This document shows, in pieces, positions 8,416-15,435 of a stretch of DNA of 64,000 nt. The stretch lies in IMG/VR virus record IMGVR_UViG_3300032931_001151, positions 124,001 through 188,000 of that record; one strand, 5' to 3'. The translations under genes were made by a program, and so were the position numbers. Within the stretch, counting starts at the first letter, position 1. Every line of letters starts with the position of its first letter. The notes beneath the pieces are model-generated. The model was not told the origin of the DNA, did not search any database, and was given only the letters and a program-made list of their open reading frames with translations.

Positions 8416-10362
8416 TTATCCGTTTGATACGACTTCGGAGAAACTAACTCCGGTAGATACCGCAGTGAAAGTTAATGTAATAAATTCTGCAACTCTATTT
8501 GGCTTAACCATGATTTGAGCAACGAATTCGTTATTATCAATAACATCTGGGGTATTATTTGATGTATCGCAAACAACTTTATAGTCTGTTATACCTCTTT
8601 GCGACTTAATTCCGGATAAGAATGAATTGGCTAAACTTGAGAATCTTGCTCTTGTGAAGTCATCATTGAATTCAAAGATAAGGAATCTTGCCATCTTTTC
8701 AATGCTTCTTTCCATATTAAGGAATAGTCTACGAACATTGATACGATCGAATGCGGTTGGAGCAGCCGAAAGTGTCTTTTGACCCCAAATAACAACCCCT
8801 TGTCCAAAGAAATTTGGAATTGGATTGATTCTATTTGAATACATTACGTCTCTTTGGGCTTGATTTGGATTAATAGCAACCGCATTTATTCCACTAATGA
8901 TACCACGATTCAATCCAGCGGGTGCCCACCATTGAGCGTTGTTGAAATCTACATCTGCAATTATTTGACCAACATAACCAGCAACGGGAACCCAACGATT
9001 TACTTGATTATATTTGTCATAAATATTAAAATATTGTCCATATATTGCTGAATATGAAGAATTAATATTTAACGATCCCAATGGATCTCCACCTTGGACA
9101 TATGCTTTCATCAAAGAGTATGCATTTGCATAAGGCTTTGAATTGTTTATATTAAACATTTTTGATGCGGGCATACTTAAAATTGAGAAACAATCTTTAC
9201 GGATTTGACTTGAAATGAAATCAAGAGTTCTCTTAAGATCGTCAACATATCCTGGATCTAAAAGAAGATCTATTTCAAGAGTTTCTTTATTGGTGAAATT
9301 ATTAAACCATTGTTCTGAGATTTCACCCGTTAAGTTTCCAAGACTTGAACTTAATGAGTCCGCACCCATTAGATTGAATTGACCAGTTGATTGAACTATA
9401 ACGCCGTCTGCACCACTCTCTGACCCATCAACGAAGAAGTAGATATAACTACTTGCCCCATTTATAACAAGAGGACCAAAATCTCTATTTCCTTGACTAT
9501 CAACACTATCTGCATTTTTTGAAACTAAGAATTGTTCTACGAGAGATCCGGCAGGACTCCACACATATACGGCAAATTTATCTTGTTGCGCTATACCAAA
9601 TGCCGTAGCTGGAACTACTGAAGTATCCATTTCTATAATTGGACCAGTTTCAAATGAAACGTATTCAGAAAGTAAAGTTGTATTAATAGCATAATCGTTA
9701 TTAACATCAATTAATTCATCTCTTAATAACGGACTATCGGAAAGATAAGGAACAGCGGGGGATGAGGTTGTGGATGGAGTTCCATTGTACCAAGTTTCTC
9801 CAAGTGTTTGTAAATCATCTAGTGAAACAGCTTGAGAAATTTCTTCTTTGAATTGCTTTAGAAGATCATAATCTAAAGCACTTATAATAGATACTTTAAC
9901 TCCATCATAGTAAGGTCCAGCACCAACTGCGTAAACGTGGAACATTTCACTATCAAGAAGTTCTACATTTCCATCAATCGCTTCATGAGCAGAAATATTG
10001 TCATATGAAAGGGGATAATCGGAAACTGGTTTTTGAGTTGGAAGAATTGTTAAGTTTGCACCCGACAATCCAACCGTGGCACCCGCACAAAGGGTATTTG
10101 CATTTTCTGTTCTAACAACATAAAGTTTATTACTTCCACCTAAGAAGGCGGCGGATGTAAAGAAGTGTGGATAATTTACAGCGTCCGGTTGGCCGAATGT
10201 ATTAACATAGTCTTGCTCATCCGAGACAAGAGTTACAACATTAATAGGACCTTTTTCGGCAGCTACAACTATAGCACCGACCGAACTTGTTACGCTTGGA
10301 ATTCTTAGTGTTTCGTTCGTCTCTACTATTGCTACGCCGGGAGATTGAAGTACTATTGCCAT
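8416..10362 (-). CDS. gp18: Tail sheath protein gp18
   Basis: 'SPGVAIVE', 'WWAPAGLNRG', 'WGQKT', 'FDRINVRRLF', 'FEFND' sheath motifs. Confidence 0.95.
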   Translation of the reverse strand: MAIVLQSPGVAIVETNETLRIPSVTSSVGAIVVAAEKGPINVVTLVSDEQDYVNTFGQPDAVNYPHFFTSAAFLGGSNKLYVVRTENANTLCAGATVGLSGANLTILPTQKPVSDYPLSYDNISAHEAIDGNVELLDSEMFHVYAVGAGPYYDGVKVSIISALDYDLLKQFKEEISQAVSLDDLQTLGETWYNGTPSTTSSPAVPYLSDSPLLRDELIDVNNDYAINTTLLSEYVSFETGPIIEMDTSVVPATAFGIAQQDKFAVYVWSPAGSLVEQFLVSKNADSVDSQGNRDFGPLVINGASSYIYFFVDGSESGADGVIVQSTGQFNLMGADSLSSSLGNLTGEISEQWFNNFTNKETLEIDLLLDPGYVDDLKRTLDFISSQIRKDCFSILSMPASKMFNINNSKPYANAYSLMKAYVQGGDPLGSLNINSSYSAIYGQYFNIYDKYNQVNRWVPVAGYVGQIIADVDFNNAQWWAPAGLNRGIISGINAVAINPNQAQRDVMYSNRINPIPNFFGQGVVIWGQKTLSAAPTAFDRINVRRLFLNMERSIEKMARFLIFEFNDDFTRARFSSLANSFLSGIKSQRGITDYKVVCDTSNNTPDVIDNNEFVAQIMVKPNRVAEFITLTFTAVSTGVSFSEVVSNG

Positions 10363-10400
10363 TGTGGATTCTCCTTTAAAGGTAATGTCTCGCTAAATCA

Positions 10401-10445
10401 TATTTATAAGCAAAACAAATACTTTATCGGTTACTAGTATTTATA
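10401..10445 (-). promoter_or_regulatory. Tandem T4-type late promoters (sheath/tube)
   Basis: TATAAATA at 10401-10408 and 10438-10445. Confidence 0.75.
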
Positions 10446-10458
10446 CAAAATGGCTTTT

Positions 10459-12198
10459 TTAATCTTCGGATTGCATCTCTTTTTCAAAATTTTCCATGTC
10501 TTGTTCTGGACTTGTATAGCCATCCATGTTGAATATTTTCTTAAAATCACTCAATACTTCTTCGTCTTGAACTTCTTCGGGTCGAGTAGATTGTTGAACT
10601 ACTATTTTACTATAAAAATCATTTTTATTATCATCCCACCACTTTGACCTTAACATATATGATACCCAGTAACTTGCGGCTACTTGGTCGTCCATATTGC
10701 CATTCCCACGTTTAGCAGCAAACTTGCCCGGCTTATTACCCTCTTCATATATTCTTAATTCAACTAATATTGAATTAGCATATATCTTACATACATCACC
10801 TTCAACGTCTTCTTTGAAATTAGTAGTTGCCAAAGGCTTTGTTTGAGCATTGGCGTTTACGCCTAATGTTTGGTTGTCATAATCGTAATAAACGTTCTCG
10901 TAGCCCTTTTCCATATATATTTCGTTTAATAGAATGACGCCTAATCCGGTTCCATTATTTTCACATATAATAGAAGCATTATTATATCTTTTAGCTATAG
11001 TTTGTGCAATAGAAGCAAAATCAAATACATTTATATCATTTCTCTTGTATAGTGCTGCTAATTCATAGTAACCTTCTGTATAGTAATTAGTTACATCATA
11101 TATCGCAACCACCGAATTATCGCTTCCTGCTCCGGAAGATACGTCAAGACCTGCAATATATACTCTTCCGGGTTGAGGGTTAGACCATATGTTGAACCAT
11201 TGACTTTCTTGCTTAATAGGGGTCTTTATCATCTTACCCAACGAATCAAGAGCCGCACCACTTAATAAGGTCTTTGAAGAACCCTCAAATTTACATTCAT
11301 ACTCTTGCAACCACGACTGTAAGGAGCCGAGAGCCGCTATAGTGTCTTTCTTAAATTGCTCATCTCTACCCGGAACCTCCCACCATTCTACTTTGAATGG
11401 AGCAAACGGATAAGTACCATCTTGTTTATTAGCACTTTGCCAAATCTCGTAAAATAGGCCGGCTGGACCATTTGGAGTAGACACCAATATAACTTGACCT
11501 TTATTTCCAATAATTGGAAAATTTGATTTCCAAAATTTATCCGCAATATTCTTAGGAACGAATGCGAATTCATCACAAAAAAGTATCTTAGCCGAGAAAC
11601 CACGCAAGGCATTTTCGGAAGTCGCTGCGCCAAATATTGCCGACCCATTTTCAAATTCTATCTTTGTGTTATTATATTCCGTAACACCTGGCTTCATAAA
11701 TGCGGGCAATCCCTCGTATGCTTTACGAATATCGTCAAGAATTTCAATGGCATTCTTTTGCTTATTAGCCAAAACTGCTATATTGCAATGCTCGTTGAAT
11801 ATAGCCGACCAAAGTAGATATATACAAGAAGTTGTAGTGTTATGACTCACTAAACCATTAGAATAAAATTCATGCTCTTCCGAATCTACTTCAACGTCAT
11901 ACATATTCTCTTCATATCCAAGATTTGATATGTAATTACATGCATAATACCCAACGTCCGTTTCAATTAAAGTTCCAATTTGAATGTCTTGTAAATATAT
12001 CGGAGTATGATCTATTGTATAAAGAATATGTGTATCGGCGGCTTTTAATTCATCTCCGTTAACCAACTTAATGTGCCATACTTCATATGGTATAGTCTTC
12101 ATTACCTTATTGATATTTTTAAATCCTTGTGGAGTTTTTATAAGATAGTTAGAAGGTACGGTAAATACTTCTTCAAATTTTCGTATCGGTTGTTCCAT
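10459..12198 (-). CDS. gp17: Terminase large subunit, C-terminal part, preceded by split-intein IntC (aa 1-120)
   Basis: Intein block F/G 'MYDVEV...FYSNGLVSHN' followed by Thr+1; then 'LFCDEFAFV' Walker B, 'STPNG', 'QEYEC' and nuclease 'GLDVSSGAGSD'. SD GAGGA. Confidence 0.92.
   Translation of the reverse strand: MEQPIRKFEEVFTVPSNYLIKTPQGFKNINKVMKTIPYEVWHIKLVNGDELKAADTHILYTIDHTPIYLQDIQIGTLIETDVGYYACNYISNLGYEENMYDVEVDSEEHEFYSNGLVSHNTTTSCIYLLWSAIFNEHCNIAVLANKQKNAIEILDDIRKAYEGLPAFMKPGVTEYNNTKIEFENGSAIFGAATSENALRGFSAKILFCDEFAFVPKNIADKFWKSNFPIIGNKGQVILVSTPNGPAGLFYEIWQSANKQDGTYPFAPFKVEWWEVPGRDEQFKKDTIAALGSLQSWLQEYECKFEGSSKTLLSGAALDSLGKMIKTPIKQESQWFNIWSNPQPGRVYIAGLDVSSGAGSDNSVVAIYDVTNYYTEGYYELAALYKRNDINVFDFASIAQTIAKRYNNASIICENNGTGLGVILLNEIYMEKGYENVYYDYDNQTLGVNANAQTKPLATTNFKEDVEGDVCKIYANSILVELRIYEEGNKPGKFAAKRGNGNMDDQVAASYWVSYMLRSKWWDDNKNDFYSKIVVQQSTRPEEVQDEEVLSDFKKIFNMDGYTSPEQDMENFEKEMQSED
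11839..12198 (-). mobile_element. Split intein C-fragment (IntC, 120 aa)
   Basis: Block B-like 'AADTHIL'; terminal His-Asn codons at 11844-11839; +1 residue Thr (ACT, 11838-11836). Confidence 0.9.
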
Positions 12199-13354
12199 TT
12201 AATTCCTCATTTATTAAATTAACACAATAGTTAATTATAGCATGTTTGTCTTTTTTATAGTCCTTTTCTTTAATATGTATTATTTTTAAAGTAGGATTGA
12301 ATTTTATAATGTTTTCTTCTCTAATTCTATCCCTTTCTTGATTTCCCCTCTTTTCCCCGTGCCAATAATCCCCGTCAAATTCAATACATAGGTTAATTGA
12401 GGGAATAAAAAAATCAAGAAACATCATTTTCTTTTCGGGGGTTATTATCATATATTCAAAATTATCTCCAAATGGATTAATTATGTCTTCATTTTTCCGA
12501 GTTGCATAGTACACTTTTAATTCGTAAGGCAAAAATGACATTATGCTATTAAATAAATCTTGGGATATTTGCGAATAACCCTTACCATTATTCATCTTGG
12601 CTCTTGCTATTCTTTCAATTTCCTCGTCTGGTTTATTTAATAATGTTTCTTGCCATTTATTTTGTCTTTCTTTCCATCTTTTAATTCCCTCTTCCTCACC
12701 AAATTTTTCAATCATTATCTTTTTTGAAAATGTTTGTTGTCTCTCATGAACTTTTTGTTTTGCTTCTTGCTCGGAATATCCCTTTAGTACCCAATATCTC
12801 TCTGATGATGTTGACAAATGGTAGTCCGGATTTTCTTCTTTTCTTTTGGTGAGAGTATCCATCGCCCGTTCTATTCTATTGGTGTTTTTTGCATACCATG
12901 CAGTACTACAAGAAAAGCTACAAAAATCATTAAATCCCCTATCAAATCTAAATCCGTTCTTCTTTCCACATTGCTTACAATGGGTAAAATCTATAGGTTT
13001 CATCATATATTTAATATAATACTCTTCTGTTACCATATTATGTTTCTTTAAATGTCTACTTAAATTTTTCAAAGAGTCAAACAATTCCCCACATTCTTCA
13101 CATTTTATGGTTTTAATAGATTCTCTTCTCTCTTGTTCTAATTCTCTTGTAGATTTTATACTATGTACTTTTTTCTTGTGAGTAGCAAGAGAGATTTTAG
13201 TAGTGCATTTCTCTCCACACACATCGCATATAAAAGGAACTATTCCTTCATATTTCTCAAAATATTCTGCTATATTACACTTATGCACATCTCTTAAGTG
13301 TTGATATAAACAAACATAATTTGGGAACTCTTTATTACATAATTTACAAAGCAT
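12173..13354 (-). mobile_element. Free-standing putative homing endonuclease: C2H2 zinc fingers plus Vsr/DUF559-like PD-(D/E)xK domain
   Basis: Three CxxC...HxxxH fingers, a CxxC...CSxxC motif and C-terminal 'LDFFIPSINLCIEFDGDYWHG'; lies between the two terminase halves. Confidence 0.8.
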
Positions 13355-13374
13355 AGTTATTCTCCTTCATAGTA

Positions 13375-13394
13375 TATTTATATTAGTATACCAT
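13375..13394 (-). promoter_or_regulatory. Late promoter plus extended -10-like site upstream of the endonuclease and TerL-C
   Basis: TATAAATA at 13375-13382 with TGGTATACT just upstream. Confidence 0.65.
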
Positions 13395-13408
13395 ATAGGA
13401 AAGAAAGT

Positions 13409-13756
13409 TTAAATACTTTTTATCATATTGAAAAATTCTCCAATTTCTATCTTTTCAATTTTACCACTTATTTTGTCTAATATTTCAACATATTGTTGAG
13501 ATTGAACACATTTTCCACTTTGTCTACCACTCATAACAACTTTGTGACGATTTCCAACGAAATGCTCAAGTAGCCTTTCTTGGAACTCTCTTAAGTTAAT
13601 TACATGTTCTCCCGCATCACTAATAACCTTATAGTAATTGTTAGCAAAATATTTTATGTCTTGTTTACATCTTAAAATTTCGATAACTTGTTCTTCAGTT
13701 AAATTTCTAGTTTGATTTGGCTTTATAACTCCATTTTCATCATATGTAATTGGCAT
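13409..13756 (-). CDS. gp17: Terminase large subunit, N-terminal part (aa 1-82), fused to split-intein IntN (aa 83-115)
   Basis: 'EILRCKQDIKYFANNY', 'LREFQ' Q-motif and Walker A 'GRQSGK', then Cys1 'CVQSQQYVEI...IEIGEFF'. Confidence 0.9.
   Translation of the reverse strand: MPITYDENGVIKPNQTRNLTEEQVIEILRCKQDIKYFANNYYKVISDAGEHVINLREFQERLLEHFVGNRHKVVMSGRQSGKCVQSQQYVEILDKISGKIEKIEIGEFFNMIKSI
13412..13510 (-). mobile_element. Split intein N-fragment (IntN, 33 aa)
   Basis: Begins with Cys (TGT, 13510-13508) immediately after the Walker A Lys; block A-like pattern. Confidence 0.85.
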
Positions 13757-13765
13757 AAATTTATT

Positions 13766-14320
13766 TTATTCCTTTCTAACTTCTGCTTTAACTTCTATTG
13801 TTTTTGGGGAAGACTTTCCTGCTACATTTATTTGTTTCATTAAATCTTGTAATGTTCCTGTAAATGCTATATTTTGTGTTATACTGGCAGGACCGTCTCT
13901 TTTCGCTTCTATCTTTTGTCTCTCTATAGCAAATTCTTTTTCTTTAATATCTATATCTCTATAACTATCGGCGGCAGATACTACCGCATTACTTAAAGTA
14001 GCTATCACTTCAACATATCGAGGTGAAGGATCAATTTCCATTTCGCTTTTAGTCATTTGTAGAAGACCGAATCCCTCAAGAGCCAATTCTTTATACATAT
14101 TTTTTGCGAAGGCATCACCCTCTAAACTTCCCATTTTTTCTAACTTCTCTTTAATTGCTTTTGCTTGTTCTTGACGTTCTTCAATTTTATCAAGAGCATC
14201 TTCACTAGGGGAAGATTCAATAGATCCACTATCTAAATCTGATAGATCGTTAACATTAGATGATATACCTAATGATTTTTCTATCTTTTTTTCGGACAAT
14301 GACTTTATTCTTTCACTCAT
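13766..14320 (-). CDS. gp16: Terminase small subunit gp16
   Basis: 'PSPRYVEVIATL' and 'TQNIAFTGTLQDL' motifs; position between gp15 and gp17. Confidence 0.75.
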   Translation of the reverse strand: MSERIKSLSEKKIEKSLGISSNVNDLSDLDSGSIESSPSEDALDKIEERQEQAKAIKEKLEKMGSLEGDAFAKNMYKELALEGFGLLQMTKSEMEIDPSPRYVEVIATLSNAVVSAADSYRDIDIKEKEFAIERQKIEAKRDGPASITQNIAFTGTLQDLMKQINVAGKSSPKTIEVKAEVRKE

Positions 14321-14328
14321 AAAACCCT

Positions 14329-15435
14329 TTAAATTTGTAAGGGTGGTGGCCCTATTGTATTATTCCAATCCTCATACTCTTGTGGTGCCTTCGGGTCTGG
14401 CATAACCGGAGCCTCCGGATTTAAACTATTATAATAATTATACGACAAATTTCCCGATTCTGGCCACAAATATCTTAGTGGGGGATTATGAGTATCTTGA
14501 AATTGCCCTATTGTTATATCAATTTCACCTTTACCAGAATTGCTAGTAGGAGTAAACACAACCTTATTTTGATTTTGCCAAGTATCTACATTAATAATAT
14601 AATTAGCACCACTTATTTGAGCTGTAGCACTACTTGATTGGTCTAAATCTGCTATTCTTGATAGTAATGTAGCATCAACTCCATACATTAGAGAACCACT
14701 TACTCCAGTAGTTATAACCTCGCCATGTGCTCTTAAACTACTTGATTTACTCATATCCGCAATACTTATACGAGTTACAAAAATCTCTTTATCAAAGTAA
14801 ATTGGCTTATATAAATTACATTCTACGGTAAATGATAGATTCCATTGTAGTAATCTTCTATCCGGCTCATTTAATTCAGAAACGAAATTTGGATTAACAC
14901 TATTCAATCTAACCATACATTTACGTTCAGACTCTACTCCACGCTCTTTCAATGAAATATATAGTTCTGGGGCAAAAAATGGCAATAGATTTTCAAGTAT
15001 CTGCACTCCATCATCCATGTACTTAGTCCACAATACAACTTCCATTTCAAGAGAATATGGGACCGTTTGAAAGTCATAATTTTTAACTCTTGTTTGACCC
15101 GTTGATGTATCTAAATATTCAATAAATAGATTTCTCTTTTGAAGTTGGCCACGCATTCTTTCCGGAACCCACGAAATACCATTCCAAGCAACGCTAATTT
15201 TTGGCAATGTATTATCCACTTCCGCACGATCTTTTCCTAATTGAACCGTTAGTGCTGAAATAACTTTCTCTTTTGGAGAAAGAATAACAGGAACGGTTTT
15301 ATAACCAATTATTTGTCCATATTGAGGGGAATTTCTATCCTTCTCGTATATGTGAAGCCGAATGTCCTCAAATAACTCAGCAAATGCTGCTATATGACTC
15401 CAAATTGTTCTATAGTAATAGACTGTGCGGCTCAT
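14329..15435 (-). CDS. gp15: Tail sheath stabilizer / completion protein gp15
   Basis: 'YYYRTIWSHIAAFAELF', 'VPVILSPKEK', 'QILENLLPFFAP'; probable start at 15435 (ATGA overlap with gp14). Confidence 0.85.
   Translation of the reverse strand: MSRTVYYYRTIWSHIAAFAELFEDIRLHIYEKDRNSPQYGQIIGYKTVPVILSPKEKVISALTVQLGKDRAEVDNTLPKISVAWNGISWVPERMRGQLQKRNLFIEYLDTSTGQTRVKNYDFQTVPYSLEMEVVLWTKYMDDGVQILENLLPFFAPELYISLKERGVESERKCMVRLNSVNPNFVSELNEPDRRLLQWNLSFTVECNLYKPIYFDKEIFVTRISIADMSKSSSLRAHGEVITTGVSGSLMYGVDATLLSRIADLDQSSSATAQISGANYIINVDTWQNQNKVVFTPTSNSGKGEIDITIGQFQDTHNPPLRYLWPESGNLSYNYYNSLNPEAPVMPDPKAPQEYEDWNNTIGPPPLQI

Follow-up and report, generated by a model that had tools for sequence, protein, structure and literature searches.

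Fractured genes that combine split inteins with free-standing endonucleases have been described by Dassa 2009, among them a Lake Gatun locus similar to the myovirus gene gp17 (PMC2677866). Atypically split inteins are also known from phage large terminase subunits (TerL), with AceL-TerL, GOS-TerL and the consensus intein Cat (PDB 6dsl) as examples (Thiel 2014, Bachmann and Mootz 2015 and Stevens 2018, all as cited in PMC13014065). TerL inteins located in the P-loop have been reported as well, the position GK/T (here and below a slash marks the insertion point or the splice junction) being the 'classic' P-loop intein site (PMC5050341). We have analyzed a 64,000-nucleotide stretch of the IMG/VR virus record IMGVR_UViG_3300032931_001151 (positions 124,001 to 188,000, hereafter called the window), which is part of a 214-kb contig and in which the gene encoding a T4-type large terminase is interrupted within its Walker A motif. 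We consider it very likely that this terL is a fractured gene, the halves of which are joined by a split intein spliced in trans, and that the inserted cassette is mobilised by a free-standing homing endonuclease. This kind of element is already known from the fractured genes (PMC2677866), the atypically split TerL inteins (PMC13014065) and the P-loop TerL inteins (PMC5050341), and an earlier note on this DNA, made from the sequence alone, was right to say that the class is not new. What is new here, as judged from sequence comparison, is a distinct allele of a large family of known kind, defined by the Walker A site, a Cys1/Thr+1 pair and an A-D-x-H block B.

The cassette lies throughout on the minus strand and reads, in the list of open reading frames (ORFs), as gene 1, a 54-nt spacer, a 393-aa ORF and gene 2. 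Gene 1 (13409-13756, 115 aa) ends with ...VVMSGRQSGK/CVQSQQYVEILDKISGKIEKIEIGEFFNMIKSI followed by a stop codon. Its first 82 residues (13511-13756) form the TerL N-extein, which includes the first half of Walker A (SGRQSGK), and the next 33 residues (CVQS...IKSI; 13409-13510, with the stop codon at 13409-13411) form the N-terminal intein fragment, IntN, whose Cys comes right after the Walker A Lys. Gene 2 (10459-12198, 579 aa) starts with MEQPIRKFEE and reads ...FYSNGLVSHN/TTTSCIYLLW across residues 120 and 121; it is composed of a 120-aa C-terminal intein fragment, IntC (11839-12198), and of a 459-aa C-extein starting at Thr+1 (10459-11838, stop codon included). [quoted passage not shown] All the coordinates and lengths, and the sequences, that the earlier note had given for this three-gene layout match the ORF list. 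The loci of Dassa 2009 are likewise arranged on one strand as host N-part plus IntN, spacer, endonuclease, and IntC plus host C-part, with spacers of 27-51 nt as compared with 54 nt in the window (PMC2677866).

The two exteins were each recognised as terminase sequences. The N-extein matched phrog_5989, a terminase large subunit family (expectation value (E) 5.9e-16), aligned with residues 100-166 of T4 gp17, and was 62% identical to the N-terminus of an intact 541-aa relative, P0002. The C-extein, which contains the remainder of Walker A, the ATPase domain and the nuclease domain, matched Terminase_6N (E 8.5e-16) and showed 69-74% identity to intact relatives of 541 aa, and gene 2 from residue 121 onwards matched T4 gp17 (3ezk_A, 1.8e-46) from gp17 residue 167. 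In the T4 gp17 alignments ...RQSGK of gene 1 falls on ...RQLGK166 and T121-T122 of gene 2 on T167-T168, so that the exteins abut at K166/T167 in Walker A, with neither loss nor duplication. Together they amount to 82+459 = 541 aa, and the six closest uninterrupted relatives (P0002-P0007, 68-74% identity) are 541-542 aa long, in agreement with the size that had been proposed in the earlier note for the rebuilt product. These relatives have a contiguous MSGRQSGKT(T/V)(C/T)SCIYLLW and share the MPIKYD... N-terminus with gene 1; the comparison with intact gp17, suggested in the same note as a check, came out in its favour (contiguous SGRQSGKT). The DNA flanks of the exteins correspond codon for codon to the intein-less alleles, which denotes a clean insertion. 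Since the intact relatives are contiguous at this point and the same break recurs in independent assemblies, the junction is not due to chance. With its Terminase_6 domains, its Walker A motif and its gp16 and gp18 neighbours, the host gene is identified by sequence as a T4-type large terminase (gp17).

Searching the PDB sequences with IntC led to the recovery of two atypically split inteins that have been characterised by experiment, CatC (6dsl_B, 2.6e-5) and VidaL (6vgv_A, 5.4e-5), while block G gave weaker matches to other inteins. The AlphaFold2 model obtained for IntC with 42 homologs is all-beta (predicted local distance difference test (pLDDT) 87.5), and its best Foldseek match in the PDB was VidaL (E 9e-8, template modelling (TM) score 0.77), followed by Cat. 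The remaining listed matches at E<=1e-3 were inteins or domains of intein-like HINT fold (bacterial intein-like, BIL). From its sequence and its predicted model, IntC is a HINT-fold intein domain. Its motifs are A-D-T-H in block B (H57), MYD in block F (M99-Y100-D101) and S118-H119-N120 in block G, directly followed by T121. In block B, His57 is conserved but the Thr position of TxxH is occupied by Ala; the active intein VidaL has Ala at the same position. IntC possesses its own ATG with GAGGA ahead, and the MEQP.RKFE start is kept in homologs.

Position 1 of the intein corresponds to Cys83 of gene 1, right after the Walker A Lys, and Cys1 was found in 11/11 of the intein-bearing N-pieces aligned. 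When IntN alone was searched against the PDB only chance matches were obtained, a result which is uninformative because the query is too short. Together with 8 extein residues, IntN aligned without gap (E 9e-7) to the contiguous mini-intein of P0114 (ARQSGK/CVKGDTLVTVYD...), a TerL of the Ackermannviridae type (Vibrio phage Kuja, Salmonella phage moki). IntN matches the first 33 residues of this mini-intein and IntC residues 17-120 match the remainder (E 9e-21), so that some 22 aa at the break remain as a linker. The two fragments are thus carried by separate polypeptides, IntN (33 aa, then a stop) being much shorter than IntC, and the alignment suggests a break after the N-terminal strands and helix, which would match the position known as S2, where AceL-TerL and GOS-TerL are reported to be split (PMC13014065). 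The matches to Cat and VidaL, the predicted fold and the P0114 alignment together substantiate the earlier proposal that Walker A is interrupted by a split intein whose IntN is short and whose IntC is long. The earlier note had also considered the 33-aa IntN to be of biotech interest; it is not short by present standards, being longer than several characterised IntN, for which 11 to 30 aa are reported in the same source.

To place IntC in its family, 1.84 billion cluster representatives were scanned with HMMER, and 733 proteins were recovered at E<=1e-3, of which 315 at E<=1e-10. Among the 150 matches listed, about two thirds have the split form, in which the domain is N-terminal and is followed by SHN/T or SHN/S and the TerL C-extein, and in the remainder the domain is internal, which corresponds to the contiguous form. 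Residues were counted in an alignment of 149 split-form IntC, where the columns of S118, H119, N120 and the +1 residue are partly fixed by the pattern used for selection. A54 and D55 were each present in 148/149 sequences and H57 and D101 in 149/149; the selected columns gave S118, H119 and N120 in 149/149, and Thr (97) or Ser (52) at +1. The Thr+1 junction and the AADTH motif underlined in the earlier note are therefore real, but they are not special to this example, since Thr or Ser is found at +1 in 149/149 and A-D-x-H in 148/149. Near the N-terminus of IntC we also noticed an R/K-K-F motif (residues 6-8; K7 in 134/149, F8 in 127/149), located in the linker region beside the break, which may be part of the docking surface for IntN. 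Many TerLs of the set carry a second homologous intein at ...E/C-x-F-x-G-S-S, and some a third one at Walker B. In four proteins of 866-884 aa (P0024, P0027, P0028 and P0031) the GK/T position is occupied by a different intein of about 330 aa, with LAGLIDADG domains, which starts with Ala or Leu and not with Cys; this position is thus shared by no fewer than two intein types that are unrelated.

The window intein resembles AceL-TerL, GOS-TerL and Cat in being naturally split, with an IntN of 25-37 aa, an IntC of more than 100 aa and a phage TerL as host (PMC13014065). In these inteins the break follows the first helix, as the alignment suggests for the window. The C-extein of Cat begins with Cys-Glu (...SHA/CE), whereas the window intein is inserted at GK/TT with Thr+1. 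Moreover, Cat matched the second-site TerL intein (...SHN/CEFLGSS) with an E of 8.8e-17, through the Cys-Glu C-extein, versus 2.6e-5 for the window IntC, and in the window no intein interrupts this second site of terL (QEYECKFEGSS). Cys+1 is found in the GOS TerL intein (PMC10189870) and in the Cat consensus as well. The AceL-TerL/Cat type, whose insertion site was deduced from the Cat PDB chain and from secondary citations, thus appears to occupy a different terL site with Cys+1. Because the Cat consensus fits this other site, the window intein would be a distinct allele and not one of the AceL-TerL site. IntC is homologous to the AceL-TerL/GOS-TerL type, which the earlier note had cited as already described, but the terL site and the +1 residue would differ. 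VidaL (PDB 6vgv), the best structural match, has Ala at block B in common with the window IntC, with a sequence identity of only 24%; its IntN has 16 aa and is split after strand beta2 (PMC13014065), versus 33 aa in the window.

Other inteins share the Walker A site itself. The mycobacteriophage intein TerL1-a (Kelley 2016, PMC5050341) has the same insertion point, with the invariant Lys of Walker A on one side and its nucleophilic Thr on the other, and the TerL mini-intein of Ackermannviridae (Kuja, moki) is found at the same site and is homologous over both IntN and IntC. In contrast to the window cassette, these two are single polypeptides which splice in cis, without a free-standing endonuclease gene inside. 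Delftia phage PhiW-14 (GQ357915) has a split intein of the same family at the same site, with the order gp16, N-piece, IntC-gp17, gp18. Its N-piece is an unannotated 155-aa ORF (L012:2985-3452; ...ARQMGK/CVQGDTEIKL...) with an IntN of about 42 aa, and its annotated gp17 starts with IntC (...YYTNGVASHN/TTTVAAF). Here the halves are separated by a 48-nt gap without any endonuclease between them, and IntN is longer than that of the window. As PhiW-14 is a cultured phage, a phage with such a terL break is viable.

The 393-aa protein encoded between the halves matched zf-C2H2 (E 4e-8), with a ROS/MucR-like match as well, and the homing endonuclease family phrog_3339 (7.6e-10). Its AlphaFold2 model (pLDDT 89) comprises three zinc fingers and a Cys4 element, together with a long helical region and, at the C-terminus, an alpha/beta domain. 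The C-terminus gave weak matches below the cut-off (PvuRts1I-like, 0.0023; MTES_1575, E 0.011). Searches of the PDB with the single sequence, with a full-length profile and with a nuclease-domain profile returned zinc-finger proteins or nothing, the last profile matching neither I-Bth0305I nor Vsr among the solved structures, and Foldseek with the full-length model returned zinc-finger structures only, which swamped other matches. For these reasons the assignment of the nuclease fold rests on homologs, of which 208 were found in the large protein database. Several of them are named 'very-short-patch-repair endonuclease / C2H2 Zn-finger protein' by the Joint Genome Institute (JGI), and among the aligned homologs MTES_1575 was matched in 26/37 and DUF559 in 15/37, both being folds of the Vsr type. 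They share a C-terminal block, LDF...IEFDGDYWHG...RD..RE...H.KE, with invariant D314, E325, D327, H332 and E363, and a 'Hef-like homing endonuclease' (H39) was reached by a weak tblastn match (6e-4). On this basis we call the nuclease domain Vsr/DUF559-like. The phrog_3339 match, the domain matches of the homologs and the 26-nt overlap are in line with the earlier claim of a nuclease gene lying between the halves and overlapping the IntC start. No endonuclease paralog and no extra intein piece was found elsewhere in the 64-kb window.

The enzyme is probably a relative of the EDxHD homing endonucleases that Dassa 2009 and Taylor 2011 describe. As in the Vsr-like I-Bth0305I/EDxHD family (Taylor 2011, PMC3239194), the putative nuclease is C-terminal with invariant acidic and His residues, the protein is bipartite, with a DNA-binding N-terminus and a nuclease C-terminus, and it is tied to intervening sequences. 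The N-terminus of the window endonuclease, made of three C2H2 zinc fingers and the Cys4 element, differs from the NUMOD/helix-turn-helix type of the EDxHD family, and Dassa 2009 also reports NUMOD motifs (PMC2677866). A combination of C2H2 zinc fingers with a Vsr/DUF559-like nuclease was not found described in the literature.

The leader of the endonuclease gene contains a late-promoter-like TATAAATA box (13375-13382) and a strong ribosome-binding site, AAGGAG (13362-13367). A hairpin predicted at 13363-13400 pairs UCCU with the AGGA of this ribosome-binding site (fold z = -3.2), and 0/200 shuffled sequences were equally stable. In the related contig L008 the stem is retained through a compensatory change from UCCU/AGGA to UCCC/GGGA, and a 26-nt core of the leader is identical despite a 53-68% difference at synonymous sites of the flanking genes. 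Another contig, L006, has a different hairpin, which likewise covers its ribosome-binding site. According to Dassa 2009 (PMC2677866), such hairpins are present at 15/16 loci, ten of them with TATAAATA, and are tied to translational repression of the gene-fracturing endonuclease in phage Aeh1. The window therefore has in common with these loci a hairpin with TATAAATA that would mask the ribosome-binding site, an endonuclease 3' end overlapping the IntC start, a probably Vsr-related nuclease and a phage setting. Over the window, 15 TATAAATA boxes were seen (6533-61969) versus 18 expected, a total not above chance; 13/15 are on the minus, coding strand and two are located ahead of the tail sheath gene (10401-10408 and 10438-10445). 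Given this count, TATAAATA was rejected as a general signal and kept as a local feature only.

The same cassette was found in further contigs from independent samples. L008, which originates from an independent JGI sample, encodes ORFs of 115, 393 and 579 aa and a TerL 90% identical to that of the window, and L004 and L006 have the same three-gene cassette with exteins about 40% identical. In all three of these contigs an ortholog of the endonuclease lies at the position seen in the window, and additional contigs show the three-gene arrangement as well. The 115-aa homolog of N-extein plus IntN in L008 (P0388, L008:3445-3792) is named 'predicted TIM-barrel enzyme' by JGI and looks mis-annotated. 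Between the window and L008 the proportion of synonymous differences (pS) was 0.53-0.71 and that of non-synonymous differences (pN) 0.035-0.097. The ratios of non-synonymous to synonymous substitution rates (dN/dS) were 0.09 for the N-extein, 0.11 for IntN, 0.06 for the endonuclease, 0.03 for IntC and 0.035 for the C-extein, values that are rough because dS is near saturation. All parts of the cassette and both exteins are under strong purifying selection.

Comparison of the window with L004 and L006 gave identities of 65-72% for IntC, 40-42% for the C-extein and 41-44% for the endonuclease. The high identity of IntC fits either a transfer from lineage to lineage or a very tight constraint; as the endonuclease is only as conserved as the exteins, it could result from constraint and not from recent transfer. 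The distribution of the cassette is patchy. In a tree of the C-exteins of 51 TerLs, the split or unsplit state needs at least 7-8 changes (gains or losses), and the well-supported clade in which the window and P0001 are nested contains six sequences without intein. Presence of the cassette varies even between very close TerLs (P0010 versus P0026; the window versus P0002), so that recent gain or precise loss is needed. All combinations are met among close relatives: the intein may be absent, or be inserted at site 1 alone (the window), at site 2 alone (L009) or at both (the P0018 contig).

Several of these relatives deserve a description of their own. In the contig encoding P0018, P0270 and P0390 (ENA ERZ1426824; TerL identity of the relatives 72-89%), terL is in three pieces. 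It has a Walker A break with a zinc-finger endonuclease and a second break at ...E/C-x-FEGS, where another atypically split intein is present, its parts being separated by a DUF7487 ORF of 329-332 aa. The second break is found alone in L009:4160-7164. L007, a 306-kb viral contig, encodes an IntC-TerL (L007:6013-8466) with neither N-piece nor endonuclease directly upstream, where a P-loop kinase-like ORF stands instead; the N-piece may be encoded elsewhere in the genome. The second split of L007 is at QEYDC/C..., with an N-part tail of about 150 aa. Finally, the terL of an intein-less relative (L005:1562-3174) consists of two overlapping ORFs of 326 and 232 aa, which looks like a frameshift or a sequencing error and not like a fractured gene.

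In the mechanism that we propose, the 393-aa endonuclease would be the engine of mobility. Expressed from its own late-promoter-like box, with a translation limited by the hairpin masking its ribosome-binding site, it would cut the intein-less or endonuclease-less terL of co-infecting relatives, and repair would copy the whole cassette in. An alternative is that the enzyme no longer homes and is kept for another role, such as the exclusion or outcompetition of related phages whose terL it would cut, or the regulation of late genes, the split intein being inherited vertically. The strong purifying selection on the endonuclease (dN/dS 0.06) suits such a role, as does its divergence in step with the exteins (41-44% versus about 40%), which is what long co-residence would give, and PhiW-14 keeps the split without an endonuclease. 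However, very close TerL pairs differ in the presence of the cassette (P0010/P0026, window/P0002), and an enzyme that cuts rivals may home as well. We consider a loss of homing unlikely, though another role may exist beside it.

With respect to the terminase itself, the cassette would have been inserted between the Walker A Lys and Thr, as a class-1 mini-intein itself broken after about 33 residues by the free-standing homing endonuclease gene. The phage would make N-extein-IntN (115 aa) and IntC-C-extein (579 aa) as separate polypeptides, late and with the other packaging genes, and IntN would associate with IntC into a full HINT fold. In the standard class-1 reaction expected next, Cys1 would undergo an N-S acyl shift, the hydroxyl of Thr+1 would be the acceptor of a transesterification, Asn120 would cyclise and an O-N shift would follow, joining Lys82 to Thr+1 to give a 541-aa TerL with a restored GRQSGKTT P-loop. 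As the packaging ATPase cannot work without an intact P-loop, splicing would be needed for its activity. We infer this chemistry from the invariant Cys1, His57, Asp101, His119, Asn120 and Thr/Ser+1, and from the activity of Cat and VidaL.

The two halves could also assemble non-covalently, via the intein fragments or alone, and work without splicing, in the manner of the Aeh1 NrdA split by mobE. Non-splicing genes in pieces do exist in T4-like phages (PMC3045599), and fragments of split inteins bind each other tightly. Nevertheless, the break is inside the P-loop (GK/TT), which needs a continuous backbone, residues that serve splicing only (Cys1, block B His, block F Asp and the terminal Asn) are invariant, and the Aeh1 case is devoid of intein sequences. 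We hold non-covalent assembly to be highly improbable.

Removal of the insert as RNA, the endonuclease ORF then being part of an intron of group I or II, has a precedent in the terL of Vibrio phage ICP1, which is spliced at the RNA level (PMC10448857), and Vsr-like endonucleases are also present in group I introns (PMC2677866, PMC3239194). A search of Rfam at E<=1 over 10000-14500, both strands, found no intron family, just a chance snoRNA match, and the intron was rejected on this ground. Furthermore, only 54 of the 1,672 nt of the insert are non-coding, its ends, which continue the reading frames of the exteins and have a stop or a start of their own, encode homology to the contiguous intein, and IntN and IntC are under purifying selection at the protein level, so that splicing at the RNA level is barely conceivable. 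Just as little probability is given to an artefact or a decayed gene (mis-assembly, a frameshifted contiguous intein or the dead terL of a defective phage): the window is a metagenomic contig and the terL of its relative L005 is in frameshift-like overlapping ORFs, but architecture and ORF lengths are identical in the independent L008 at 90% protein identity and about 1 synonymous change per site, the break is found again in more distant assemblies and in the isolate genome of PhiW-14, and dN/dS is <=0.11 for all parts.

Some of the results weigh against a trans-spliced intein mobilised by its endonuclease. Block B lacks the canonical Thr (A-D-T-H), a loss mitigated by A-D-x-H being the norm of the family and by the Ala of the active VidaL, and the near saturation of dS blurs the estimates of selection. 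The nuclease domain remains below the Pfam thresholds, has no sequence match in the PDB and gave zinc fingers only with Foldseek. Between distant carriers the endonuclease (41-44%) is no better conserved than the exteins, and the 541-aa spliced product is itself predicted from the sequence.

The genes around the cassette agree with its assignment to a phage of T4 type. A small terminase gene (gp16-like; 13766-14320, minus strand; phrog_445, E 4.6e-4) is found directly upstream of gene 1, and the tail sheath gene (gp18; 8416-10362, minus strand; phrog_23, 3e-99) directly downstream of the C-extein; a gp15-like tail sheath stabiliser gene is also present upstream. The position of gp16 upstream of terL is found in PhiW-14 and Ackermannviridae as well. 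This neighbourhood is the gp15-gp16-gp17-gp18 block of a T4-like myovirus. No near-identical DNA was detected by megablast among GenBank phages.

Taken alone, the locus is a sound and well-supported example that would not surprise a specialist. More tentatively, and with the balance somewhat against it, it may belong to a very large clade of P-loop split inteins with Cys1, Thr/Ser+1 and A-D-x-H, possibly uncharacterised by experiment and mobilised by zinc-finger/Vsr-like endonucleases. If this were true, the clade would offer tools for trans-splicing with a short IntN and without Cys+1, maybe orthogonal to AceL, Cat and VidaL, and a homing nuclease guided by zinc fingers, the specificity of which might be readable from the fingers. 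Protein engineering would in any case be concerned by the family's many natural split inteins, which combine a short IntN with Thr or Ser at +1. In genome annotation the small N-piece regularly goes unnoticed or receives a wrong name, as in PhiW-14 and L008, and IntC-TerL fusions are labelled as whole terminases. As for the biology of these phages, relatives with zero, one or two breaks in terL make up a natural series for the splitting and spread of inteins driven by endonucleases, and DNA packaging in this phage would require the ATP-binding loop to be ligated after translation.

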